A stretch of DNA of 63,557 nt, filler included, from Choristocarpus tenellus KU-1152 (Eukaryota; Protista; Phaeophyceae), in assembly GCA_964200185.2 (NCBI GenBank). It is 12 parts of 12 records of this genome, joined end to end, with 100 filler letters (N's around TTAATTAATTAA, not from the genome) between each part and the next. Parts side by side here need not be neighbours in the genome. Positions count along the whole stretch, not along the records: positions 46,865 to 52,635 come from CAXNAD020009791.1; 11 more parts are not named here. One strand, 5' to 3'. The notes below the pieces were generated by a model. That model made no database searches. It had not been told where the DNA came from and was given only the letters and a program-made list of their open reading frames with translations. This document shows positions 940 to 54,674 of the stretch, one piece after another (within the stretch, counting starts at the first letter, position 1; each line of letters opens with the position of its first letter). Both the position numbers and the translations under genes were made by a program.

Positions 940-2810
940 ATACTAAACTAAAGATCAACGTACATATAAGCTATGTTGTTTACTTGGATCAGCACAGATA
1001 ACATAAGGATAACACTAGGTTATTCGACAGATGGGAGGCTGCTTCACTTCTGCAAATATAGCATCTAGGAGGAGGCCTTTGTCCCTGTAGGGAGCTGATC
1101 TGGTGTCCGCAGGTTCCCCAGCGTGGAAAACCACATCCCATACCAAAATTCTTGTCCACCGCGAATGGGCTACCGCGGTTATGGTGCATGGGATGCCCAT
1201 TCCTTTGCAGAGTTGACCTAGATACTTCACCAATTGGTTTGTGTTGGCAGACCTGTCCCCCTGCGCTAGGGCAGGTATGAGCATGTCTAGTGTGTCCGCA
1301 AGTTCCCCAGCATGGAAAACCACATTCCATACCGAAATTCCTGTCCACTCCGAATGGGCTACCGCATTTATAGTGCATGGGATGCCCATTCCTTGGCAGA
1401 GTTGACCTAGATGCTTCACCAATTGGTTTGTGTTGGCAGACCTGTCCCCCTGCGCTAGGGCAGGTTTGAGCATGTCTAGTGTCCTCATTATGCCTCCTGT
1501 ACCCAGCAACTGGGAATCTGTTGGATAGGGCCTCCTCCCTCCCTAGGGATCTGCTGGCAGTGAGTCTAAGCTCTATGGGAGAGATCTGGTGTGCTGGTTC
1601 CAGGGGTTGTGTGGAGGCCCACATGCATTCCCCCCTTGTCCACACTGGCTCCGGTGGCGGACCAGGGTAGCAAAGAACCTTCCCTCCCTTGTTCTGCATC
1701 GTCTGGTACGTTGGCTAATTGCGCCCGGAAAGAGTTGAACCGGATCCTGTTAAGGAGGAAGGTTATCTTAGGTTATGCCCTCCTTGTGATCCTGGCATCA
1801 TGGGCTGTCAGAGTGTGGACCTCTGGGGCAGGTGTAGGGGTGGTTGTCCCCCCCCAGGCTGACCCAGCCTTGACCAATAATTCCTGCCAAGTCTTCTGAA
1901 GGGACTCCTGTCGAGAGGAGGGTGTGGATGGATGATTGCAGGACCCTATCTGTGGGGCTCATACAGATGGCTTGTGAGAAAGACTCTTAACGAGGCCCTT
2001 GTTGCCTTGCTAGGAGGGTAGCAGGGTGGCCACCACAGATCCTACAAAGGAGCGAAAGTATCTTAGAGGGTAGGGCCGGGTCCATTTGGGGTTCAAATCC
2101 CAATGTTGCGATTTTGATGTAATTTTGGCTCTCGTGCTTGTTAGGAAGTGTCAATATCCTTGTTCTGGACACACCTTTTCATAACGTATACGTTTATACA
2201 TACTCCGAAACATTTTGGAGTAGGAAATATCATTAAAAAAACATAGGAAGCCAAGCCCCAAATGGACAAACAGGCCAAAACTCGTCCTCTAAGATATTTT
2301 CACTCAAGGTTACATGCCTGCGATGCTTCATAGGGCATAGGCCTAACCCCCCCCAACTTGTGGGTGTCTGTGTCTGTACTTGTTTGTACACTTCCAGGTG
2401 AAGAGACCTATTTTCACACCCCTCTTCAAAGAAGTCAGTGGCTCCCGCTGAGTCTGCTGTCTCCATTATCTTCTCCAGCGTCCACAGTGAGGTGTTGTCT
2501 ACTTGTTCCATGGTGGGATATGCCAGGTGGGGGGGAGTGACCCTTAACAATTTGCCAAAGCGGGAAGAGAGGGACCAGGAGTTGAAGAGCCAGGCAACTT
2601 GTTTGTCGTCCATGTCAGTCAGGTGCATGGCCAGCACTCGTGACCCTGAGCACTCGATCACCTCAGCCATATGGGCTTGAGTGAATTCATATGTTCCCAC
2701 TGGAGCCCCTAGTGTAACAAAACCATGTGGATCCGAGACCAGGTTGATTCGTGCTGTGGTCAGACGTACTAGTTCTGAGGGCGTGGCTGGTGGCCCTGGG
2801 GAGGTGCAGC
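940..2810 (-). mobile_element. CRE/RLE non-LTR retrotransposon fragment, copy 2, with internal ~180-bp duplication, MITE insertion and 3' UTR (940-1026)
   Basis: TPTSWGGLGL (GGLG thumb motif), HAQTCPSAGGQVCQH (CCHC-like) and GLLLD (RLE); 1100-1285 duplicated at 1290-1475; 940-1026 recurs inverted at 55320-55412. Confidence 0.7.
2050..2305. mobile_element. MITE family A (~260 bp, TIR GAGTSAAAGTATCTTAGAGGGTA), TSD AAG
   Basis: TIRs visible; AAG on both sides; empty site present in paralogous copy at ~783-800. Confidence 0.92.
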
Positions 2811-4599
2811 AAAAGTCTTGTCCATGTTGAGGGCGATGCCTACATCGTGTAGATCAGTATATTCAGCTGCTCAAAAGCAGTTGTTGTGGTACAGTTAATC
2901 TCCTTTGCAGAAATAGATGTGTCATAAAAATATGGTGTGATATGGGAAGGTATACCGTGAAATGATAGAAAATATCTTTCACATTTACGGCAACTGTTAC
3001 CTTTTCAGAGGTCGTTCTGATAATGAATTAGCTTTTCCTCGTTTTTTCCCGACATATCTCCAAAATGTCAGAGGGCATAATAATATACTTATATTTTGAT
3101 ATTCCAACGGCATAATAAGGTACATGATTCCACAGTTTTCCATGATGGTTCAGGTTTCTACCACACACATGTGGCAATCCTGTATATATAGAAACTTCCT
3201 CGGAGCCGCCTCTCCTAACATGCTCCCAGACTATCCCCACTTGTTGAACAAAAACCAGACTCAAGGTTTGTAATCTTCCACTGCTTGTTCATAAACATCA
3301 TGTACGATGAAATTGCAAATTTGCTAGAGTGGTAGTGTGAGTGTGTGTTTTGTATGGTGATATGGGAGGTAAGAAGTGATAAACAGACAGTAGGAACTAA
3401 AACGTAAGTGCAGACCATGCTGTCGCTTTGGTTCTTTAGTGTGCAGGTGGTTGAGCCTGAGCATCATTACTATTCCTCTCAACCTTTATGCCCCCCCATA
3501 GAGCCCCTGAGTTGGTCAAGTAGACTCCATCAGGTGAAAAGGTTGCGTTCTGACTGCCAACTTGTGGTATCTGTCCCGTAGAAGAGACAAGTAGTGCAAC
3601 GTGAGGCATCTTTGGGCGCAATATCACCTATCCCGAGTTGTTGAGGTCAACCATTGGAAGAACGATCTTCTTCCAGAAATTGGAGGTTGAAATTCTAAAG
3701 GTTCAACTCTTCCTCTAAGACAAGGTACTCTTCCAGGTCAGGCGCAACCGAGGGTCTTCAATGCCCCCATTGAGAAGGTGGATCTAGTAGTGTAAGGGAT
3801 AGTCCAGTCTACCTTCAATTTAACGCCTCCAACCACACAAGAAGAGGGGGAGCACTGGACCGGATCTGGATGTCAGCCCAGGAGATATCTGTGGCCTCTA
3901 GTCCGAACTCAGCATCACTGCTGTCTCGTCCCTGCACTTCATTCATCAGAGGTCCTTCCTGGCGAGATGGGATCGAGAAACACCTCTATCCAGGGGTGTG
4001 GTGTGATTTGCTTCTTTGCGCTCTCCTCAAAAAATCTTCCAAATTTTACTGAGCCTTGGTTTCATGTTGGTGTGGCTGCCCTCCTTCTTGCTGTCCGACC
4101 CCAGGGGTGCCTGAGTAGCAGGGGAGGGCACAGACCTGGATGGGCCAGTACCTTACACTCTTTTACAAACAGATTCACATGTTTTGGTAATCTGTATACA
4201 AAATCGAATTTTTGTAGAGGTATGAATCGGTGCCCATTACAATCCGCCACGCTAATCATAATAACCATTTAAAAAAAACTGAATATTTAGTTCTTCCATG
4301 TACCATCTGCACGCACATACCTCCTAGGGTGTTGGTTGTATTGTGTGCTGGGGCAGGCGTGTGCACATGCGCGTACTATGAAAACAAAATGTGAAAATTC
4401 TTTCATATTGGTGAAAGGGAATCTAAGGTGCCCTCTATCCCTCTCTCTCTCTTTTACAACCATGATCATCATTCTTCTCACACAAACCACGGGCAGGAGA
4501 AGGAAGATGACAGCTTTATGTCATGTATACTTGTGTTGTTATTGCTACTACCACTGTGGTTCTAGTGTCATGCGTGCTCGAAGCAACTGCAAGGTCGGG

Positions 4600-17807: not shown

Positions 17808-19685
17808 CTCCTTGTTGCAAGGTGGAGGCATCAGGCATATATCGATAACGTAGAGTAATACACCACATAGCAGTATTCAAAGGGATTTCACTAGCTGCGT
17901 AGGTCATAGAGTAGATGTACATAAAGCATCCACCAGGAAGGTGAAAAGAGAAGCACCACCAGGAACGACAGACTGGTACAGAGAGTATCTGTGCCTTGTG
18001 AAAGACCTAACATCAGGATGAAGGGTGGGTTTTTCTTGTATATCCCAGGATCCTCCAGCATATAAGAGCATAGAAACATTGTTGATCTAGTACTTCTACG
18101 ATGATTCTGTTCTCAAATAAGGTCATTGGTCTTGAGCATGAAAAAATATCATGTGTATGTCCTTTCTTCTTGACAAAAATCGATATGCTGCAACATGTGT
18201 GCAATGCACAACTCTATTAATCATGCGGTAGTACCAAAACATGCGCATGGAAAATTGGAGTGTTCTACATTGATTGTCATACCGTTATGTTTTCCCACTT
18301 CTTCCACAAACTACCACTTTTGCAACCTGCGTATCCTATTCCTCCAGGCTGGATATTAGGTTCTCCCGCCAGTCCCTTAACCTTCTCATTTGCACTAAGC
18401 ACTCTTCCAAAAGCCAAAGGATAGCCCCCTCTCGGCTCAGTCCTGCTGGGATGTTAGTTGCTCCACTCGCCTCGGGACAACCCCCTGAACAACACTCTAT
18501 TGTGCCCAATGTCTCCTCTGCTGGATGATTCATCATTCTCTGCAAATTACTGCTGACAACAGGTCCAGTGCTGTTATTCATTCCTGTTGACGGTAAATGA
18601 CTAGATGCACTCCTCCTCTGCGACAGATATTTTTTCCCACCCCACCTGCCTTTACTGCTTTCCTGGCAAGGGGGACTTCCACCAGCCTGTTGCAATAGAC
18701 TCAATCTCCCCTGAAAGAGCCTGGCTTTGGCATCCCAGAGGAAAAACGATTCATTCACAGCCTCTAACGTAGCAACAAGGTCCATCTTCCTCTGAGACTT
18801 GACTTCATCCACGTACTCCTCATTTGTTTCATCACGTGTGATCGCTCCTTGACCGCACAAGGCATGTCTCTTGCCTCTTCTGGGGAAAAGATACATACAG
18901 TGCACCTCTGCACTAGCAAGGTCAACATGCACTGTTGTCAATGGGGAAGGAGGAGGAGGTGGAGGAGGGGGAGGGTGCAGGGTTTTTCCTTCTTCCAGGG
19001 GAACTGCATTCCTCATAGCTTGCTCCCCATGTTGCAACACGGGGCTATGTGCTCTTGTGGTGGCTGGTATGCCAGTCAGAACACTTGTAAAGCTTGAGCT
19101 GTGCACTAGATCGTCAAATATTATGTGCTGACGTCTCACCTCTGCGCCACCCTCTCTTGTGCAGTTGGTAGCATTCACTCTTGCTGGGATGTCTATCTCA
19201 ATAATTGACTGCGAATCTCCTGCTCGGTGCACCAACACCACGCTACCTCTTCCCCAAAGTGTCATCACCCTTGCTCCTACGAGGTCTTCTATGTGTATCA
19301 TGCCATCTGACTCTCTTCTTAGTTTCTTGAGGGCCGAAAGAGACCAGTTTAAAACTTCGCTTGCTGGACTGCACTGCCCTCGTGCATATGCTCCAATTTT
19401 ACTTTGTCCTCGACTGCACTGACCGTTTTTCTGTCCCATGTCTCCATTGCGTGGGGAAAGGGGAAATGTAGCTGTGCTACTGTTGTGCCTGCCAATGATC
19501 AATGTTGGCGAGGATTAGGAGGCGCTTATATATTTTTCAGTTTTTGGTTCTGAGGATCGAGGCCTTTTTGCTGCCCTCTACTTCCCTGTTGCGTCAATTT
19601 CATCTAAGCTGAGGTTACGATCGAAAAATCCTACCATCATTCTCGCCTCCCTTGGCACATTTACTTTTATCAGATCGCCAACTTA
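17808..19685 (-). pseudogene. Unidentified host gene, probably pseudogenised; 388-codon open segment 18336-19502 plus flanking exon-like segments with nonsense codons
   Basis: Long ORF with polyproline; plausible splice sites; in-frame TAG/TAA/TGA in flanks. Confidence 0.5.
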
Positions 19686-20564
19686 GAGAGAGAAGTCAAG
19701 TCCCATCAAACAGGGGAGAGGAAGGGGGGCGTAGAGAGGAGAGAACAGAAACTTGGGATTAAAATCTCCCACAGACTTGAGGTACCCCGATATTTATTGT
19801 AGAAAACGGCTGTGCTGGAGTTTTTGGGTAGATGGGAACTTACAGTCTGGAAGAAATTTCTTAGAAAAAGGATTAGACTGCGGGACATTGTGGAAGAGAG
19901 CTCTGACTTGACAATAACGTATAGAGACAAGAGCATCTGCTGCACCACCACAGTGGCATAGAATTATTGAGAGAAAATGACATACTCTTGCTCAGTTTCT
20001 CGTGTGCCCATATATGCTCGTGCAACCCCCATGCCCAGTACCCGTAACTGATTTATACCTTGACTGCGTTCTTTTTACGCTCCTCCAGTTCAATTTGAGC
20101 CAAAGTATCTTAGAGGGTAGAGCTGCGTCCATTTGGAGGTCAAAATCCAATGTTGCGATTTTGGTGTAATTNNNNNNNNNNNNNNNNNNNNNNNNNNNNN
20201 NNNNNNNNNNNNNNNTTAATTAATTAANNNNNNNNNNNNNNNNNNNNNNNNNNNNNNNNNNNNNNNNNNNNGTTTGCATTTAGCGCTGTATTAAATAGGG
20301 GGTGCCCCTTTGCCCCCCCCCCCCCCCCCCCACGTACCTGTCTGTGTTGCAAATATCAACATTCTTGCTCTTGCCACCAACTCTACCGTGGCCGTGAAAA
20401 AACACCACTAAAACAGTACCCCCCACATGCACATCACCAATAAAGGAGCACTCAACAATCCACTTCCCCCCTATGCCAAACCAACCCAGTCCTAACCCCA
20501 ACCCCAACCCTAATCCTAATCCTAACCCTATAACCCTAAATCCAACTCGTTTGTTCGAGGGTAG

Positions 20565-21287
20565 AGCCTCCCCGGACGCAAGGAGGACAAGCGCTCCCGG
20601 GCCAGCCCCAGCACCTACGAGCTCGTAATGAACGCTGCAGCATCTGCTGGGCAGGATCAGGTGGCCCTGGATATTGCCGGAAGTGCCCGGGCGGCAGGTG
20701 CCAACCCCTCCACAGGCTGGCTCACAGTGGAGATTGGTGCTGCAGGAAGGTTGAGGCTTTGGAGTCATGCCTCCTCCCTTCTAAAAGAGGCGAGGTCTCC
20801 GGCTCTAGGAGGTGGTGGTGGGATTGGCGCCCGTTTCTACTCAGCGTACATCGAGGCCTCGGTGCTGTGCGGGCAGCCTGAGCGCGGGCTCGAGGTTCTC
20901 AGGGAGCTAGAGGCGGGAGGTGGGGGACAAGGCCGGTTGGGGAGGGGGATTAGTGGCGCTCTCCCACCGCCAGATGGGCGAACATATGTGGCGGCGCTGG
21001 GTGCATGTGAGGCTGTGGGAGGGAAGAAGGGGGTGGAACTGGCGTTGGCCGTGGTGCAGGTGGCTATTGGGGGGAAAGGGGCAGGTGGAAGGTTAACCAT
21101 GGCTCGTGCAAGCGCTGTGCTGGAGAAGGCGGGGGAGGTTTGTGGTGCGTTAGGGGCTGCTTCGGCCTCTGAGGCCTTGGCGCAAAAGGCAAAGGAAGTC
21201 TTGGGGTTGGCTGGGAAGGAGGCGCCTGTGATGGGGGAAGGGGAGGAAATGGGGATTGGGGGAGTAGAGGAGGATGAGGTGGGGTAG
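20565..21287 (+). CDS. Terminal exon of a pentatricopeptide-repeat (PPR)-like protein
   Basis: STYELVMNAAASAGQDQVALDI, FYSAYIEASVLCGQPERGLEVLRELE, PDGRTYVAALGAC; GC-rich; TAG acceptor at 20562-20564. Confidence 0.75.
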   Translation, partial: SLPGRKEDKRSRASPSTYELVMNAAASAGQDQVALDIAGSARAAGANPSTGWLTVEIGAAGRLRLWSHASSLLKEARSPALGGGGGIGARFYSAYIEASVLCGQPERGLEVLRELEAGGGGQGRLGRGISGALPPPDGRTYVAALGACEAVGGKKGVELALAVVQVAIGGKGAGGRLTMARASAVLEKAGEVCGALGAASASEALAQKAKEVLGLAGKEAPVMGEGEEMGIGGVEEDEVG

Positions 21288-24200
21288 TGTGTCTTGATGG
21301 TGAGATTGGAGGGCTGGTGTGTGACTATGTGAGGGATAGTGTGACGGAGGTTGGGTTGACTTATTTAACTGTGCTCATGACGTTCTGTGACTGTGTTTCT
21401 GTTTTTGTGTCTGTGTCAGTGTGTTAGCCGTTTTTGTAGTGCATTATAATAGTTGTATTGAGGTGCGCCCCAATTTTCCTTTTGATACCACAATGCATGC
21501 CACAATGTGCTTGTTGTAAGAGAAAGCTGTGCATGTGGATCACCAGTGGGGATATTTTCTGTGCAAGCAAGTGGTTAGTATGATCTGATAGAAATTGTTT
21601 AGAGAGAGAGGACGGGTGAGTGCATTGGCCTGCCTTGGTAAGTACAGAAAGGCTGTTATCAAGAGTTGGTCTGTGCAGATACCTGTTGAGTGCTGTTAGG
21701 GGTGGGTAGTAAGAGTGATCTTATGTTGTACTCCAAGTATGATATAGTGCAATGTTAGGGATTGGTCCATATAGCTCCCCTCACAGCACCCCTTTCCCTT
21801 CAAGTGTCCAACTTGCTATAATATTTCGGTGGTGCATATGATGTACCGTGTAAGGTTTGTGTATGGCATTTTCCTGTTGAACCAAGGTTGCTAAATATCA
21901 CCGTAGTATGATGACCATGATGAACTGTTTGCAATCAAGGTCTAAAAGGTCAAAATGCCGTCGGAAGAATTGAACACTCAAATTTTGTTAATCTATGTTC
22001 TATGTCTTGCTGTGGGAAAAGAAGTGATCGCTACACACTCCTGCTGTTCAACCCTGGGAACTTCATTTTGTATTTTGATGTTCAATTTTGTATTGAAAAT
22101 CAATGCATGCTTTGACTGTTTTGAGTTGTTCTGAAAACGAGAACAAGATATGGAGCTAATTTACATGGTGGGTGATGCCATTTTTTATTATCAGTAAGGG
22201 TGGACCACTATGCATTATTGGTACAAATATGCATACTGCTACAGCGTGTAGGACAGAGTGCAGGACTGTTCTGCAGCTGCAGAGACTCATGTGTACATGC
22301 CATCTGCTTGACTCATAGTTCTGACCTTGGAGACCTCTTTGTTGAGTTCCTGTATGTATCACATGTATGTTGAGGATAGCCTTTTCATTGATTCCAGAAT
22401 GGATTGCTTACAGTAATGATTTTGGTTTGGTGAACGGTAAGCATGTTGTTTTAACTTTATTGGGTTGATCAAATGGAGTGTGTATGTTTGCAGAATCACA
22501 TCACATAATAAGGTGCTATGTTGACCAACATAGTAGTGACTTATGTTGCGATGATAGTAGTGAGGGATTGTGCACGACTTGGTCACCCCCTGCAATTTAA
22601 CCCAATGCACTTCTATGTTTCATAGTACTCTGTGCAGAATATGAATGACAACACTTTATATACTTCATTGTTGAAACGTTTTTCCCGTCCCTCCTAGTTT
22701 TGTCGGGACCTACCATGTACAAGAAAACCTTATTATAGTATAACAATTTGCATTTTACTTTGATCAGTCAGTGCGTGCTCGCTCAGTACATTGATCGATT
22801 GACTTCCCAATTATTATCTCACTCTTCTTCTACCTAGAATGACAAGTGTTTTGTTCAGGGGGGGTCAAGGACAGCTGCAGGGAAGGTAGACAACAAATGT
22901 TCATAGTTGAGCACGACGAAATGAACAAAATGGGTAAAAACTGCGATGGGGTCGCCCACCCTGCCTTTAATCATTTCTTGTAGGAAAATCTCGAAGGAGT
23001 AGACCAGCAAACCGCCCACTACATATTGTGAGACGTTCAATCACGTCGAACGTTTCTTGTGGTACAATTTGCCGTGATGTTTGCCAATAATGGACCAATT
23101 CATATATAGAATACACTGTAACTACTGGTGCATGCTTCGAGGTATACAGCACTGGATACAGAGAGGGAGGAGAGTGAATGTGCGTCAAAGTAAACGAGAG
23201 GTACCCAGAGTTGCATTTGAGGATGCTGGTGATGATGTACAGTATTAGACCTTTTTTTTTATCAAATGCATAGAGGAAATTTTTCGAATTGTGCCTACAA
23301 AGTTTTAAACAATAGAGAAATCAACCCTTTCAAGTCAAACATAGCACCTCATCCATAGAAGTATGATGGGCGAATCGCAAAATATTGAAAGATTGGCTTT
23401 TATTGCAAAATTGGAAAAAAGTGGGTACCTCTCGTTTGCTTCGGCTCTGAATATTAGAAGAGTTCGATGTTAGTATGGATGAGAAGATTTGGGAGGGAAC
23501 AAGGGCAGTACAACCTCTGTTTGACTCAACGTGATATCTGGACTATTTCTCTTATTATTGTTGCATACACGACTACGTTGTTTTTCAGTTTTCAACCCAT
23601 CCATGCATGACCCTTCCTTACTCCTCCACCTTGGGAAAATTTGACCATGTTTTTGCTTGGGAGAGTTGAACCACATTACATTGATCAGCTAATAATAATG
23701 ATGATGCTTCAGTATATATTAGGTTATTACGTACTCCAGCAGTAAGCATATTCAATTCATTTCTCGCTCGCCATCAACAGTTTCTGTCTGTTTGTAGTGT
23801 AGTGGTTGCTGGACAAGAAGAGGGCCCGTCAAATATTTAGGAAGATTCACGTCAGTCAAGGAATGATTTCCTTTGAAGGACAGCGTTATTCATTAACGTA
23901 AATATAATTATAGAGAACCTACCTTTTTTGGTTGTCGAACCTTTTAAATCCATGTAAAAATCTGAAACTGGGGTCACAGATTTGGGTGCTTGCATGTTGT
24001 GTCTCTCTGTCTCTGCTGTTTGCCAATTCAGAGTTCCGATACAGCACAATCCGCTTCCTTTAACTCTACCTAGAAGTCCATGAACACCTCCCCCTTGCCA
24101 CAATGGACTACTCGAGCAACCAACCATATATATTCAATTACGATTGATTGTTCTGCCCACCCCTTTACGTTTCTTGCTTCCCACTACTACTTGGCTGGCC

Positions 24201-46800: not shown

Positions 46801-46937
46801 NNNNNNNNTTAATTAATTAANNNNNNNNNNNNNNNNNNNNNNNNNNNNNNNNNNNNNNNNNNNNCTGTCTCGTGTGCCGTCGTCGCCTTCCTCCATCACC
46901 TCCACAACCCCATCCCCTCCTTCTATTCTTTTTGTTT

Positions 46938-47880
46938 TCTTTAGGGCTAATAATGGCATATATATAGTTTTCATTGGTCTCTCCCCTGACACATCTGTAA
47001 AATGTCTGAGGGCATAATAATAAAAATATAATAATATATATAAAGATATTTTTTAAGCGCTTGCAAGCGTAAAAAATGGGTACAAAGAAATCCCTAATTT
47101 TATTAATTTATTATTATACCTTCTGATATTTTGCAGATGTGTCAGCGGGAAAACCAATTAAAACTATTTTCGAAAATATCAACCTCCCAAAACATTAAGT
47201 TCTATTAATATCAAGTTATTATGTGTTAGGCAGGGTCCAATCAGTCGTGGGGGGTGTTCAGAATCACCAGTTGTGTCATGGTGGGGTGCTTCCCCAAGCT
47301 CTATCAGTTATCAAATCTTAGGGAAAGTTTTGATGGGACCTCAGATCCGATGGATGATATCACACCTTTGTGAATATTCAACCGAAAGTGGTTTGTGTTT
47401 ATGATATTGTTGGGAACGTCACCAATGACAAAGAAATGTGCGCGCGCAATACACTTGTATGTGCTCGCAGATGTGTATTTGGACTGAGATCAGCTCCCAA
47501 AGGGACCCGTCCGTCACAATTAAAAGCAATGTAAGAAAATAAATGCCTTGTCAGATAAGATTGTAGAAATCATAATCCATTCCCCTCTATGAGCACAAAA
47601 GTTTAGACCAGAACATTTTTTTAATTACAGAATTATTCTGATAACATAAACAAAGTAATTAAACCTTTAGCTTTAACCGGTAGCAAAGTTGATAAAAAAA
47701 AATGGTTTGATATTAAAACAATTCATCAAGAAATATGTAGCAAAATTTAAAATAAAAAATATCAATAGGCCAAGTCAGCTATATATATTTTTATTATTAT
47801 GCCCTCTGACATTTTGCAGATTTGTCAGGGGGGAAACCAATGAAAACTGTATATATGTCGTTATTAGCCCTAAAGAAATA
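46938..47880. mobile_element. Element bounded by ~90-bp inverted repeats (repeat C); other C copies at 3040-3085, 33110-33200, 47110-47170, 55625-55715
   Basis: TTAGGGCTAATAA..CCCCTGACACATCTG..GAGGGCATAATAATAAAA at left and its reverse complement at right; no clear TSD. Confidence 0.6.
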
Positions 47881-48098
47881 AAATATCCTAAACGTAAGAA
47901 CACTTTAAAACATTGTGAGTTTGGAAACCACTAATCTAACAGTTACTTCCCCGATATAAAATTTTGTACTACTGTCGTCCTTTGCTTCCCATCTACCTAC
48001 TACTGTGTGTCCCATCAAGCTGTGCACTAATTGGTTACAAACCAAATAGTACACGGTACAACTTAATTCACTAAAATCTTATCTAAACGATACCTTCA

Positions 48099-48241
48099 TT
48101 ATTTTGCTTTAGGTAGAGCACCATTTTTAGCAAGTATCAACTGATATTCTCTTCCTAATAATCTAGCCGCAAATATCCATAATATTACAATAGAAAGAAA
48201 GATAAATGCAAAAAATGGAGTAGCTTCAACAAAAGTATGGC
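48099..48241 (-). pseudogene. tlc: Fragment of bacterial ADP/ATP translocase (Tlc/Npt), last TM helix and C-terminus, Rickettsiales-like
   Basis: [38 protein letters not shown] resembles the Rickettsia Tlc1 C-terminus as I recall it; AT-rich, no intron. Confidence 0.75.
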
Positions 48242-48492
48242 ACTGTTGCATGTGTATTTGCTCAAATGGACGATGAATCAAGAAGAGCAGCTTATAGTTG
48301 TGATATTACGTATGTAACCAATAACGAGCTCGGATTTGATTTTCTTAGAGATACATGAAATTTACTAAAGAAGAATCTAGGGTACAATTACCTTTTATTT
48401 ATGCTGTAATAGACGAGGTTGATTCAATTTTAAATGATGAAGCGAGAACTCCGTTAATTATACCTGGTCTTGTTAACGATACCACGGAATAG
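48242..48492 (+). pseudogene. secA: Fragment of bacterial preprotein translocase SecA (DEAD motor region), frameshifted
   Basis: [82 protein letters not shown]. Confidence 0.93.
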
Positions 48493-48619
48493 GAAACCAA
48501 CGGGGTCGCAAGGGGCTGGTCAGAAGAAGGAATACATGGGAAAGGAAAGGAGTGGAGACTAAGGGAATGGCAAACAAGGAATAAGCTAATAATAATAATC
48601 CAGAATTCGTGAGCAAAAC

Positions 48620-51600
48620 AAGCACGGGGATGGAGTTGGTCATACATTATCATGGAAATAACTGTTGAACAAAGAGTTGTCCTCCTGAAAAAGAAAAAAG
48701 AAAAAAAAAGAAAGATTAAATAAATTAAAAACAAGTGTGCAAGAGTCATTTTGAAAAACATGAACTCGGGTCTTCTCTGTTCATACATGGGTGCACATAT
48801 ACAAAAAAAAACAAATATCATAAGTTGATATTGGCCAAACAAACATCCATGTGACAAATATATATACATATATATATAATATGTAACAACACAACCACAA
48901 ATCATTGACACCCAAAAATATATTTCGCAACACCAATATATATATATATAAATATATTACCTCCAGAATAAAATTCAATCAAGTATGGAAACTTTTTTTT
49001 TTATGGATCAGAGTTGATATTAACCGAAGGTTTTGTGTTGGAATTAGGTGTATCCAGACAATGTTGTTGCCTATATGCAGTAATATTTTCTGCACATTGT
49101 GGAAAATCACGTGGACATAGAAGAATACCTCAGAAGCACGGTCATAGCTTTTAAGGCGTAATCTATATTCTATGTTCATAGGTGAACGAGGTCAACGGCC
49201 AAACTTGTGTCCCACAATAGCTTCAATAATGTAAGGACCAATGGTTACTGGGGATTCTAAATCATCAAGATCCGGTAAGAGCAAAGTTCAACCAAGAAAA
49301 AGTTCTTTGAGTTTAATTAAATCAGGTTCAGATAGTTGTTTGGAATGTAAGGTTTCAAGTGGGCTAAGTGAACAGAAATATCTTTGATGTCACCTTATTT
49401 GCGGACGCGGTAAACTACAGGGGAAATCTTAGCAGTCACTGAGATAGGTTCATGCTAAGGATGGATCAATTTTGGATTAGGTCCGTCAAGGTCAGTGTGT
49501 GGACGGCGCACCAAAACTTGAGCTCCAACTTGAAAAACAGGGAAAACAAGAGCTTCATTGCTAGCATTTTTTTTTGCATTCTGTTCTCCCAGATTGCGAC
49601 GGGCTAATTCAAAAGCTAACTGTGAGTTCTCAGCTGTTGATTGAGTAAGCTCTTGACTAGAATGTGCAACTATTGTTTTAGAGAGACCAAAAATGACATC
49701 TATCGGTAAAATTGGCCGGCGTCCAAAAAGCAGGGAAAAAGTTGTTTCTTGTAATGTGGTATTGTATGCCGTATTGTGAGCCAAGTGAAGGAATGGAATA
49801 ACAGTCGCCCAATTATTCTCTGCTATGTTACTGTACATGGATAACATTTGATACGGAGTACAATGAACACGCTCTAAAACAGAGCTGCCCTGTGGTCTGT
49901 AGGGTGTGGTACGAGTTTTATGATACCCAAACACTGTCTGCAATTCCAGAACAAGTTTATTTTCAAATTCCAAAACTTGGTCAGAGTGGACGATTTCGGG
50001 TGCCCCAAACATTGAAAATATCCTTTCAAACAAAGCTTTGGCAATGGTCACTTCTTGTTTGTCTGGAATGGGAATGAGAAAAGCAAAGCGTGTCAACTGA
50101 CAAGAGCCGACAGAACATACCAGCAACCACGAGAAATGGTTTTATATTGTGCAAGATCAACAGCAATCCATTCGAATGGTCGAGTGGCAGGAATTTGTCC
50201 TTGAGTCAATGTAGGACGTCTGTGAGAAGTTTTTCGTCTTTGGCAAAGTTGAAATATGGGCCACCAATACCGGTCTGGTACCTTGTCAAGAGTATGAGAA
50301 AGACCGAAGTGACCTCCTGAAGCAGGATGATCATGGCAAACATGTAATACCAAAGATTGCAATTCTTTTGGAACCACTAAATAACCACGAAAAGCACGGT
50401 GTTTGCGTGTATGCCCTGGAAAATATCATCGGCAAGTTAGTGTTAGCATCAACATAAAAATATGACATGCTATACCTCGATTCGCGGGGAGGTAAAGACA
50501 CTGAATCAGGGGCTTGTAAGTACGCAAAGTAAAGAGAAAATTGGTTCATTTGTGCTTCACGAAATTTTCATGCGGTCCAAAGTTGGAAAGATGTTCACTG
50601 AACTACTAAAAACTTCATAGTCTCTCTGAATTATATCTTATTCATGAAGGCGATCTGGATATATTTCGTATGCTTGAAGTGGGGTTACCGCACTTGACAT
50701 TGTTTTTTCTGGAATACTCCTGCAAATAGGAGCAATTACTTTGGGCATTCGATCAATCTCAGTATCAAAGAGGCGAGAAAGGGCATCAGATACAGCATTG
50801 TCTCTGCCTGGTTTATGATGGACTGTGAAGTCAAAATATTGAAGAGCAAGAGCCCAACGTATCAACATGTTATATGTCTTGCATATAATACAGATATCTG
50901 AGTGCCGCATGGTCAGTGAATAAATCAAAATGTCGACCCCAAAGATATGGACGGCAGTAGTTAATGGCATGGACCACTGCTAAACATTTTTTATATGTGG
51001 CTGAATAATTTCGTTGTGCTCCATCAAATATCTTGCTAAAGTAAGCCACAATATGAAGTGAGGTGTTCGTTGGATCATCAGACGCTTTTGGGGCAAGAAA
51101 ACCACCACTGCCTACATTGGAAGCATCCACATGTACCACAAAAGATTTTGAGAAATCAGGATAATGCAAAAGGGGTGCCGATATTAATGCCATTATAATT
51201 TTGGTCAATGCGGTATCGTGAACTGATGCCCATGCTTTTCCTATTTCACCAGAAGGATGCGCTACGAACTCCTTACGTGTGAATTTTAGAAGGGGTTCTG
51301 TCAGGTCTGTATAATATGGGATGAACAAAAATTGCACATACAAAAATAGAACGAATGTCTTTTATTGTTCGAGGAGTGGGTAGGTCAACAATAGCTTGAA
51401 TTCGAGCTTTTCCAAGACGTACCCCTGCACTAGAAACAATATGACCAAGGTATTCAACTTCTGCTGGAGGAACCTTCAATTTAGAAAGTTTTAAAGGAAG
51501 GCCAGCATTTTGAAGGGCCAAAAAAGCTTTTCAATCAAAGTTATATGATGCTTCCAAGTGGCAGAACAAAGAATAATCATTGCAGAATCTTGGGGTCCCA

Positions 51601-52563
51601 TCTGCTTTAGCAACGATAGTAACAGGGGAACCCCATGGGCTAGAACGAGCCTCAATTAGTCCTTGGTTTTGTAAATGTTAAAAACATTTATCAATAATAC
51701 CTCTAACATGTGGATTGGTTCGATATGGTGCTCGACTAATAGGTCTGGTATCTGGTTCGAGAGGGAAATCGGCTTCAGTAATGGTGCAAATTCCCAATTC
51801 AGAGGTGTCGAGGAACACATTGAGCGGAATTTGGAACAAAGATTCAGTGTTTCTTGTATTTGAGGTGAAGAGAAAGTACTGTTGGCAAAGGCAGGTTTCA
51901 ATGCATTATCAAGACGAGTTCATTTAGACCCAGATAGAGATATTGCAGACGCAGTGTGAGAGTGTTTCGTATTAACTATATTTGCAGGGTGTAGATGTAA
52001 CCAAGTAGAGTATTCTTTGGTAAATGAACTGCCTGTGAGGATATATTAGCAATTTGTACTACCCCTGACCCGTCATCAGAATCCCACGTTGAATCTGTTC
52101 AGGCAACAGCAATATATTGCCAAGGATCATTAATATTTAATTAATCTATATCATGAAATAAACAGATACGTGGTTCTAAAACAGTATCTCAAGTATCAGA
52201 GGGGGTTTCGTCACTTCCAACAGATACATGCGTTTCTGATTCTGGGTGAATGGAATTATTTTCCCTCAAGCGAATTGGGACAGATGGAACTTTCGCTTGT
52301 ATAGCTGCTATTTGAACAGGGGATGACATATCAAAAGAAGGGGTAGTACGACGAATGACAGGTATTACAGTTGCAATTTTTGGAGTGATAACATTAGGGT
52401 TAGGGTTAGCGTTAGGGTTCTTTGAGCTTTCCAGTAATATGTTGCTCCAAAAGCATCAAGAACAACGTTTTCAAGAAGAACATCATCAGATTCTAAAGTG
52501 GGCAACACTAAAGCTTCAACTGGGATAGTAATATCACCCAATTGAAGAGAAAACCTGATAAAC
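48620..52563 (-). mobile_element. Gypsy (chromovirus-type) LTR retrotransposon relic: RT (core deleted), RNase H, integrase, chromodomain
   Basis: VEYLGHIVS, VHVDAS..QRNYSAT..LFTDHAAL, HDHPASGGHFG, TTPYRPQGSSVLER, YIIEAIVGHK. Confidence 0.93.
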
Positions 52564-54674
52564 TGTTAAAGTATCCCCAAAATCATCAAAGAGGATAAAG
52601 GTGATAAACCCGGCGAGATTGCTTGGTGTCTGTAGNNNNNNNNNNNNNNNNNNNNNNNNNNNNNNNNNNNNNNNNNNNNTTAATTAATTAANNNNNNNNN
52701 NNNNNNNNNNNNNNNNNNNNNNNNNNNNNNNNNNNCGTAACGGACGCCCCCTCACAGACCACCTCCCCCCCCGAGATAATTTATTCTGTCAGAGGCTTAG
52801 GTATGTCAAATCGTGATGAAAAGAAGATGCATTGCATATCTTTGGAGACATTTGTTGACGACAATCTCGGCAAGTATTAGTGTGAGAAATAGATGCAGAC
52901 TGCCTTATAATAGCCATGTCCCTCGTTTCCGTCAGATTCCGGACAAGGTTTATCTTTGGTGGACATTTTGCCTCGACTACGTCCTTTAACTCTGCATTTA
53001 TGGGGTCTGCGTATGAGGGGAATTTGGTGTTAAAGGTTGACTGAATGGGTGGTTATCATTAGAAATCGGGTGGTGGACAACTCTGTGGTTCACTACCAGG
53101 AAATCTATGTTGACAAAGACTCTGGAAGATTTATGGAGGGGAAATTTCTGTACGTCCTCCAGGAAGACCTCATCAAAGAAATTAGGATCGCCATTTTGCA
53201 AGGGTGGTAGAATGTGTTCTGTTCGTTCAATCTCTTTGTATTCTTGCCCATGAATACTTGGAAACGGTTCCCCCGTGGTATAGAAAGTGCTTTTTTGCTC
53301 CTTATCGAACCCTTACGCCAATCGTAATGATGTGGCATACGTAGTTTTCGAAGTACAAGCAATGTACCAAGAGCGTTATCAATTTACTATTGAAACACTC
53401 TTCCACTTCAGAAATCTGGTTAATACCACTGTGAAACACTCGGGAAATCGGCACTGAGGTTCTTCAGACAAAAGGGGAGTGGGAAGACCCTCAGAAGGAA
53501 CAGTAGGGAGAGAGACAATCCAGGAGAATGAGTGACCCTCAGAAGATCACTCTCAAGGAAGGGGTGAGCAAGGATAGTGAACGAGAGGGGGTTACAAGCT
53601 CCACTCACCAACCCGATATTGACTTCATCAGTTGTAGCAATGCTGATATCTATGAGGAAACAGACGTTTACGTGTATCTTCTGAAGGAAGGACCATTTAA
53701 AGTTATATGGTTGGCTACCACACTAATGTCTGTCGAAATATATTAACAGAAGGAACAACTACAACAGGAAATTGTCATGTACTTGGTGGAGAATTGGTCA
53801 TACATAACTTTTAGCAGTCTTCGCCCTATCGGAAAAAAGAGTTGTGAATCGGCTCCGATAAATCGGACGCACAAATTTAGTAGGTTATTTCACGTGTCAT
53901 CTGTTTTTAAGAGAGATTTTGATTCAATCGCACCACGCATAACTCCACACGTCGAATTTTATCCGCAAATATCTTGCCCTATAGCACAGCTGTGACGTAA
54001 TGATAGGTGTCAAATACAAATATCAACCTCATTTATGGAATATATAAAAATTGTTTTTGGCCTATTTTTATCAGAAAGGTGGAAAATTTCTTGCGTGTGT
54101 AATCAGAGATATTTGATATATTGAGATATTGGTTTGATTTATTGGAAGTCTGACGGAATGTTACAACCCCCTCTTCTCCATTCGCCACAGTAAGAGATGC
54201 ATTCCCTTTCATGTAATGGAAGGAATGTCTATCACTCCTCAGAAAAGTACAAAAAGGTGGGCTAAGTGTGACAAGAAACACATGTTCATATTTTCATTAT
54301 TTCGGAGCAGGAATAATATATGTACTGGTAGTGTCCCTCAGGTGATGTTCACACTCAGTGTAGTGTCTGAGCTGACACGACCAAAGCGAACATAAACTAA
54401 GAAAGAGAAAACACTCCAGGTACCACACTAACCTAAACCGATGTAGATATACAACCGCTAGGCAAAAGAGGTGGCAAAAATCACCTTACAGGGTTTTGTG
54501 CTTCTCTCCACCAATACTATGATTTCCTGCTACCTATGCCTTCCACACTTGGACACCAAAGGCATCCTCACAAGAGTGCAGCACCGCACAATGTCATCAA
54601 TCACATCCCGAGAGAGACGGTTCAGCTTTTTGGTGACTGTGTTGCCAGGAGTGGAGAAGGGTTCAGCACATAGA

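Follow-up and report, generated by a model that had tools for sequence, protein, structure and literature searches.

Introduction

NUMT and NUPT mosaics consist of donor-genome pieces that were ligated irrespective of orientation, with hardly any or no microhomology at the joints, were captured in nuclear DNA and have since drifted neutrally. DNA of Wolbachia is also reportedly found in host chromosomes, mostly as non-functional, decaying fragments, as Dunning Hotopp and co-workers in 2007 and Nikoh and co-workers in 2008 are said to have described. To our knowledge, Wolbachia and the other Anaplasmataceae lack TLC translocases. The nearest documented case that we found to the locus described here is a Rickettsiaceae-derived insert of ~9 kb in the nucleus of Volvox carteri, parts of which resemble four genes (Kawafune et al., 2015; PMC4324946). 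This insert has been read as an endosymbiotic gene transfer from a past symbiont, the strain being without the bacterium (PMC4324946). In the Trichoplax adhaerens genome project, tlc1, secA and PRK06567 were recovered and were read as genes of a living symbiont (Driscoll et al., 2013; PMC3641634).

The window analyzed here is a stretch of 63,557 nucleotides, filler included, that joins 12 parts of the genome assembly of Choristocarpus tenellus KU-1152 (Phaeophyceae; GCA_964200185.2), and the analysis covered one of these parts, the 5.8-kb piece at positions 46865-52635 (CAXNAD020009791.1). An earlier note on this DNA proposed that fragments from two loci of a Rickettsiales-type intracellular symbiont had been joined, integrated into the host genome and were decaying. 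This core reading is upheld by the SecA tree, by the non-native joint between the two fragments and by unitigs that run through all the junctions. In its present form, narrowed to the family, the reading is that the locus is very probably a non-functional nuclear insert of DNA of a Rickettsiaceae symbiont, in which unlinked pieces were joined and captured in a repeat-rich host chromosome.

Like the Volvox insert, the locus is Rickettsiaceae-derived, gene-like sequence in eukaryotic nuclear DNA, but where the former spans ~9 kb, here there is ~0.4 kb plus a probable 0.2 kb, in short internal or terminal scraps that meet head to head and are broken up by host repeats. With the Wolbachia inserts it shares the integration of Rickettsiales endosymbiont DNA in host chromosomes, whereas the donor in this case carries tlc and groups with Rickettsiaceae. 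The joining of short pieces from different parts of the donor genome resembles NUMT and NUPT mosaics, except that the donor is a bacterial symbiont and not an organelle. The genes represented (tlc, secA and probably PRK06567) are signature genes that were also recovered in the Trichoplax case, but the pieces in Choristocarpus are truncated, frameshifted and continuous with host repeats at host depth. The locus adds one more case to a known type of event and leaves existing knowledge unchanged. The coordinates of all features are given in Table 1.

Table 1. Features of the 5.8-kb piece, in positions of the window
Feature	Position	Strand	Evidence and remarks
Probable fragment A of PRK06567 (GltD-UbiB chimera)	47524-47589	+	NCBIfam NF005128, E=0.0015, profile 796-816 of 1031
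Probable fragment B of PRK06567, in another frame	47625-47705	+	NF005128, E=0.015, profile 829-855
Very high-copy host repeat (MITE-like)	47784-47883		Inverted repeat of 100 nt, 90% complementary to 46931-47030
C-terminal ~46-47 codons and stop (48099-48101) of a TLC-family ATP/ADP translocase gene	48099-48238	-	TIGR00769, P0001, metagenome C-termini
Head-to-head joint tlc/secA, at most 3 nt unassigned	48239-48241		tlc DNA homology reaches 48238; secA starts at 48242
secA piece 1	48242-48352	+	SecA residues ~151-187; Pfam SecA_DEAD, E=2.6e-13; alignment with P0051 and L124
Loss of 1 nt within the Asn codon of LRDNM	48353-48358	+	Base lost at 48353-48354, giving a frameshift and TGA at 48356-48358; alignment with L124 and L053
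secA piece 2	48355-48489	+	SecA residues ~189-233, including the DEVD Walker B box; Pfam SecA_DEAD, E=6.2e-11
3-nt insertion (AAA) in secA piece 2	48367-48369	+	Alignment with L124 and L053
Ile/Val to Asn in secA piece 2	48433-48435	+	Alignment with relatives
Ser to Pro in secA piece 2	48463-48465	+	Ser in 99.6% of 258 SecAs
TAG at the right-hand junction	48490-48492	+	Lies exactly where secA homology stops (alignment with L124 and L053)
High-copy host repeat on the right flank	48518-48691		Summed contig depth ~40,000 (insert, 24.5) in run X1; GC 43%
Degenerate Ty3/Gypsy-type pol, several broken ORFs	49458-51343	-	Pfam rve 3.7e-5, Integrase_H2C2 1.6e-10, RT_RNaseH_2 1.1e-27

Results and Discussion

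The secA fragment and its donor

The plus-strand internal secA piece reported previously is borne out by family models. The two Pfam SecA_DEAD (PF07517) matches cover 48233-48355 (profile 148-184) and 48355-48489 (profile 188-226), and both pieces also match the NCBIfam SecA equivalogs (TIGR00963) at ~1e-13 and the SecAs in the PDB at the expected residues, ~181-238. The motor-domain signature, including DEVD in piece 2, is thus present, within an internal piece of 249 bp (48242-48490) that represents only residues ~151-233 of ~908 and is split by a frameshift. The remainder of the gene (~800-950 codons in full, with the preprotein-binding, second P-loop and wing/scaffold domains) is absent, and what is left is a gene fragment that would not yield a functional SecA.

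The best protein match to the two pieces combined is P0051, a Rickettsiaceae-like SecA of an uncultured bacterium, with 82.7% identity (67 of 81 residues), and the best DNA match is L124/L125, with 80.4% identity over 250 nt. The rare residue states GFDFLRD and YAVIDEVD are common to the window SecA and P0051, which is encoded on a bacterial contig along with nuo genes, fliE, a reverse transcriptase and an IS110 transposase. A panel of SecA loci was collected by scanning 185,579 species genomes of GTDB for a degenerate DNA pattern that combines the DEARTPL stretch with a relaxed G.VND motif (DEARTPL[IV][IV]xGx[VI][NDEK][ND]); at least 120 loci were found, and the matches listed come mostly from Alpha- and Gammaproteobacteria. 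The G.VND motif, which the earlier note took for an alphaproteobacterial or Rickettsia-like marker, is therefore not diagnostic, being common across both classes. The listed loci are still of use as a panel that favours no lineage: among the 115 usable listed rows, the three that are most similar to the 86-residue window fragment, namely L053 (74%), L059 (69%) and L047 (64%), are also the only Rickettsiales-labelled loci. In a quick tree, the window SecA joined these same three sequences (SH-aLRT 93).

Closer relatives (n=120) were then obtained with the L053 SecA restricted to residues 140-240, and a careful tree of 137 rows and 97 columns, with no plastid SecA among the rows, was built with IQ-TREE. 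In this tree, the window sequence is the sister of P0051 (UFboot 87, SH-aLRT 0), although with fewer than 100 columns the fine branching order is unreliable, and it falls inside a 14-row clade (UFboot 98, SH-aLRT 84) in which P0083 and P0078 are named "Rickettsiaceae bacterium" by NCBI and P0076 "Rickettsiales bacterium"; P0049, the cluster of which includes a protein named "Rickettsiaceae bacterium", belongs to the same clade. A larger clade that contains the window sequence has 23 rows (93/88) and also includes L053, one Rickettsia endosymbiont and one Rickettsiaceae MAG. The secA fragment is nested among Rickettsiaceae-labelled and related uncultured sequences, so that the Rickettsiales origin that had been suggested for it stands. 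The ranking, the quick tree and the careful tree consistently point to a donor within Rickettsiaceae, and the true donor is not among the sequences compared. The closest SecAs come from metagenome assemblies that carry no genus name, and the Megaira-like donor given as an example in the earlier note is a candidate.

The locus with the closest SecA, L124, carries two copies of a reverse-transcriptase ORF of 433 aa each (Pfam RVT_1; 2031-3332 and 20399-21700), which may be group II intron reverse transcriptases. An IS110 transposase and a serine recombinase are also located within 20 kb in this locus (feature listed at 19292-20278). The donor-like lineage is rich in mobile elements.

The tlc fragment

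The minus-strand sequence adjacent to the secA piece is the C-terminus of an ADP/ATP translocase, as had been noticed previously. The ORF at 48099-48281, the first ~14 residues of which are secA read in antisense, matches the last 36 positions (437-472 of 472) of the NCBIfam model TIGR00769, 'NTP/NDP exchange transporter', with E=5.7e-5, whereas its match to Pfam TLC (PF03219; E=0.031) scores 13.5 bits, below the cut-off of 21. A filter-free phmmer search of 1.84 billion protein representatives yielded one credible match, P0001 (60% identity, E=1e-8), a C-terminal ORF of 49 aa that bears the JGI name 'AAA family ATP:ADP antiporter'. The second match in this search, P0002, is a repetitive protein with seven weak stretches and was treated as spurious.

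When JGI metagenomes were scanned with the window piece and the P0001 alignment, ten loci were found at 54-68% identity; the match is located at the C-terminus of the ORF in all ten, and the ORF has ~500 codons in nine. Three full-length ORFs from these loci were tested, and all score ~590-600 bits on Pfam TLC. Given that the matches lie at the C-termini of ORFs of this length and that those tested score so on the family model, the assignment of the fragment to tlc is sound, although the piece is too short to reach the Pfam cut-off. At the DNA level, the tlc piece is 83% identical to L001 over 71 nt. A search of GTDB genomes with the tlc piece alone, using exact 8-residue words (too strict at such divergence), gave no match, and a protein homologue search with the 60-aa tlc ORF found none. 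The full transporter (~500 residues, 12 membrane helices) is absent, the sequence upstream of the tlc piece being antisense secA.

A probable third fragment

The insert might be larger than the earlier note recognized. Two plus-strand stretches to the left of the tlc piece match the NCBIfam model of PRK06567, a GltD-UbiB chimera (Table 1), and are collinear: the 35 nt between them correspond to the 12 intervening profile positions less one base, as expected if ~1 nt had been lost with a resulting frameshift. PRK06567 has been reported from almost all Rickettsiales genomes, is sparse outside this order and has been described as one of its signature genes (PMC3641634). The matches are weak, far below the whole-protein cut-off of 1072 bits, and AT-rich DNA can favour models built from AT-rich genomes; the GC content of the patch at 47524-47747 is 27%. 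However, 18 other segments of the piece, many of them equally AT-rich, gave no match to the PRK06567 model. The PRK06567 stretches found no partner among all the fetched loci and no Pfam match, and a search of the Atlas gave no usable match. Depth is at the single-copy level from 47561 onwards, the bins up to 47560 being repeat. On balance, we consider the PRK06567 fragment to be probably real, and in that case the insert extends beyond the tlc and secA pieces. The patch lies ~350 bp from the tlc piece, with a high-copy host repeat between the two.

The tlc/secA joint and the number of donors

The earlier placement of the boundary between tlc and secA at about 48241 agrees with the alignments, in which the two DNA homologies end at 48238 and begin at 48242. 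This joint lies within perfectly matching unitigs of both sequencing runs (see below). In all four related bacterial genomes that were inspected, secA is flanked by a rotamase gene on one side and by a GATase-hemB pair on the other, and tlc is nowhere near. The tlc/secA joint is therefore a rearrangement and not the native gene order, in line with the earlier claim that two symbiont loci had been joined.

The tlc relatives are anonymous metagenome contigs that carry no lineage name, and the PRK06567 patch is separated from the other pieces by a host repeat. These two features leave some room for another tlc-bearing donor, such as Chlamydiae, Holosporales, Midichloriaceae or other Rickettsiales, or for several donors at different times. 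We regard this as improbable because SecA places the donor within Rickettsiaceae-labelled sequences, no more than 3 nt separate the tlc and secA pieces, for which a single event is the simplest explanation, and nine of the ten tlc-relative contigs have a GC content of 32-35%, similar to that of the Rickettsiaceae secA loci (31-39%).

Host context and physical continuity

The host environment of the insert is dominated by repeats. The flanks at 47735-48082 and 48518-48691 are very high-copy repeats; in particular, run X1 has a summed contig depth of ~370,000 around 47784-47883, ~15,000 times the 24.5 of the insert. The description of the patch as lying between a host repeat and a Gypsy element was accurate, the repeats being recognized by depth and the Ty3/Gypsy pol by Pfam. 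The retroelement and the high-copy repeats are also the basis on which the location is called nuclear. As stated previously, the patch is AT-rich and intronless: the GC content is 33% in the tlc/secA patch and 27-34% in the bacterial patches, compared to 41-46% in the host flanks, and there are no introns.

The MITE-like repeat is present in three copies and two orientations within 1 kb (46931-47030, 47107-47165 and 47784-47883) and is extremely abundant in the genome. Elsewhere in the genome, the right-flank repeat (ending at ~48621) is followed, after 6 nt, by the left-flank repeat (from ~47850), and both repeats may belong to a single composite element. The segment at 48692-48960 is AT-rich, consists partly of (TA)n low-complexity sequence, has low or zero contig depth in both runs and matches no families. 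Ten AT-rich segments in 48493-49000 gave no bacterial family match, and no Rfam family or tRNA was found in the 5.8-kb piece.

The continuity of the insert with its flanks was assessed with Logan unitigs (de Bruijn), which were built independently of the submitted assembly from two runs, X1 and X2. Both runs belong to one study and may include the assembly's own sample, which means independence from the assembler but not from the project; the data are unitigs rather than single long reads. In X1, a unitig of 560 nt (47972-48531) matches the locus with 0 mismatches at a depth of 24.5, and in X2, a unitig at 48009-48531, also with 0 mismatches, has a depth of 6.1. Each of these unitigs runs through both host junctions and the internal joint; its host portion comprises at least 90 nt of repeat before 48099 but only ~40 nt after 48490. 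Neighbouring unique unitigs have depths of 18-35 in X1 and 3-10 in X2, and to the right of the insert the depth climbs from 24.5 to the repeat level within ~30-100 nt. The insert is present in two samples of one study. On junctions and depth, two points that the earlier note wanted checked, unitigs of both runs bridge all the junctions at host single-copy depth.

Reads of a co-sequenced Rickettsiales symbiont could have been stitched into a host contig, given that symbiont reads are common in eukaryotic genome projects (PMC3641634) and that the insert is flanked by high-copy repeats, where assemblers err. Such an assembly chimera or contamination is nevertheless unlikely, and we give it very little weight, because mismatch-free unitigs from two runs pass through the three junctions at the depth of neighbouring unique host sequence. 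Moreover, no contig of X1 or X2 with at least 85% likeness piles up on the insert; the depth over the insert is that of a single unitig, which indicates that neither the secA nor the tlc of a close living symbiont, nor a near-identical symbiont genome, is present in the contigs of these runs. The pieces are also truncated, frameshifted and placed head to head, unlike all the intact bacterial secA loci seen.

Even less credible, from comparisons with bacterial sequences and one chloroplast carrier, is the derivation of the pieces from decayed host genes for organelle-targeted proteins, a plastid-type SecA and an NTT transporter. Both TLC/NTT and SecA occur in plastid-bearing eukaryotes, and a PDB search with the tlc piece found just a chloroplast ADP,ATP carrier, at a non-significant E=1.3. 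However, bacterial TLC C-termini match this piece at 47-55 bits and the chloroplast carrier at 13, the secA piece has 80% DNA identity to a bacterial contig (nuo, fliE, IS110) and nests in Rickettsiaceae, the single cyanobacterium-labelled row in the tree is outside the 40-row neighbourhood of the window sequence, the third fragment matches, if weakly (E=0.0015 and 0.015), a Rickettsiales signature gene, and the pieces have no introns and a GC content of 27-34%.

Lesions and extent of decay

Alignment of the secA piece with L124 and L053 reveals the 1-nt deletion that had been described as GAT AC ATG in place of the codons for DNM, as well as a 3-nt insertion further downstream that the earlier note missed. 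Both of the substitutions reported at conserved sites, DSILND for DSILID and LIIPG for LIISG, are present as well, and the resulting Asn (48433-48435) and Pro (48463-48465) residues are predicted to be damaging. The secA piece had also been said to end in a stop. A TAG is indeed found there, but it belongs to the junction and not to the gene, because it coincides with the end of the secA homology and hence is junction sequence rather than an internal nonsense mutation.

The claim that the fragment is decaying holds in part: the lesions are real, but the decay is mild. Of the 34 highly conserved SecA columns, 32 are intact in the window fragment, and the differences from L124 are mostly in third codon positions (5, 10 and 30 differences at positions 1, 2 and 3, compared with 12, 7 and 38 between the intact genes of L053 and L124). 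This pattern indicates that most of the divergence from L124 is ordinary divergence between bacterial lineages, with a modest part attributable to decay after insertion. The mild decay would fit a host that evolves slowly or, equally, an insertion that is fairly recent.

Origin and significance of the insert

A nuclear insert of Rickettsiaceae symbiont DNA most likely formed as follows. Lysis of an intracellular Rickettsiaceae bacterium would have released DNA that became fragmented, and some of the pieces (the 3' end of tlc, the internal 249-bp piece of secA and probably the GltD-UbiB piece) would have been ligated irrespective of their origin and orientation. A chromosomal break would then have taken up the joined pieces, with non-homologous end joining as the most likely mechanism by analogy with NUMTs and Wolbachia inserts. 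After insertion, the sequence would have drifted neutrally, acquiring one frameshift, one 3-nt insertion and the two damaging substitutions, and host transposable elements would have inserted nearby, one of them now lying between the pieces. We infer this order of events, as well as a single donor and a single event for all the pieces. With no reading frame longer than 60 codons, and with each piece amounting to a small part of a gene, the pieces cannot function and are expected to have no role in the host.

A more extensive version of this scenario is that a larger Rickettsiaceae genome integration was scattered and shredded by host transposons, with the three scraps as its visible tip. We consider this possible but somewhat doubtful; in its favour, only 5.8 kb of host sequence was examined and one extra fragment was already found 350 bp away. 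If correct, it would mean that a lost, germ-line-associated symbiosis is recorded, in datable form, in a host lineage that is not known for such bacteria.

The insert is a trace of an old or current symbiosis. As a molecular fossil, it indicates an association between the host lineage and an energy-parasitic, tlc-bearing Rickettsiaceae bacterium that was intimate enough for bacterial DNA to enter the chromosomes, and it could serve as a marker that is traceable across populations and related species for dating this symbiosis. It is also a warning for annotators and for contamination filters that a Rickettsiales match in this assembly need not mean contamination.

Observations on related sequences in databases

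Several of the sequences recovered in the course of this analysis show peculiarities of their own. The homologue search with secA piece 2 returned short ORFs only, and the two that were inspected are frameshift-broken secA genes on long metagenome contigs; such ORFs have just the universal core in common with the query and hence say nothing about the donor. In these ENA metagenome contigs (L002, 5414-7938, and L003, 5714-8075), secA is split into 6-10 short ORFs and the neighbouring genes are split likewise, which looks like frameshift errors of long-read assembly and not like pseudogenes. Error-split ORFs of this type pollute searches with short queries.

The locus L053 (CAMCXV010000001.1) comes from a MAG titled 'Rickettsia typhi', but its SecA groups with uncultured metagenome sequences, apart from the Rickettsia endosymbiont L047, so that the species label looks wrong. 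Finally, two SecAs filed under the rotifer Rotaria magnacalcarata (P0024 and P0025) are 92% identical to the L053 SecA in the compared region and are located on a 58.9-kb contig, which is probably a Rickettsiaceae symbiont or contaminant in the assembly of this rotifer.
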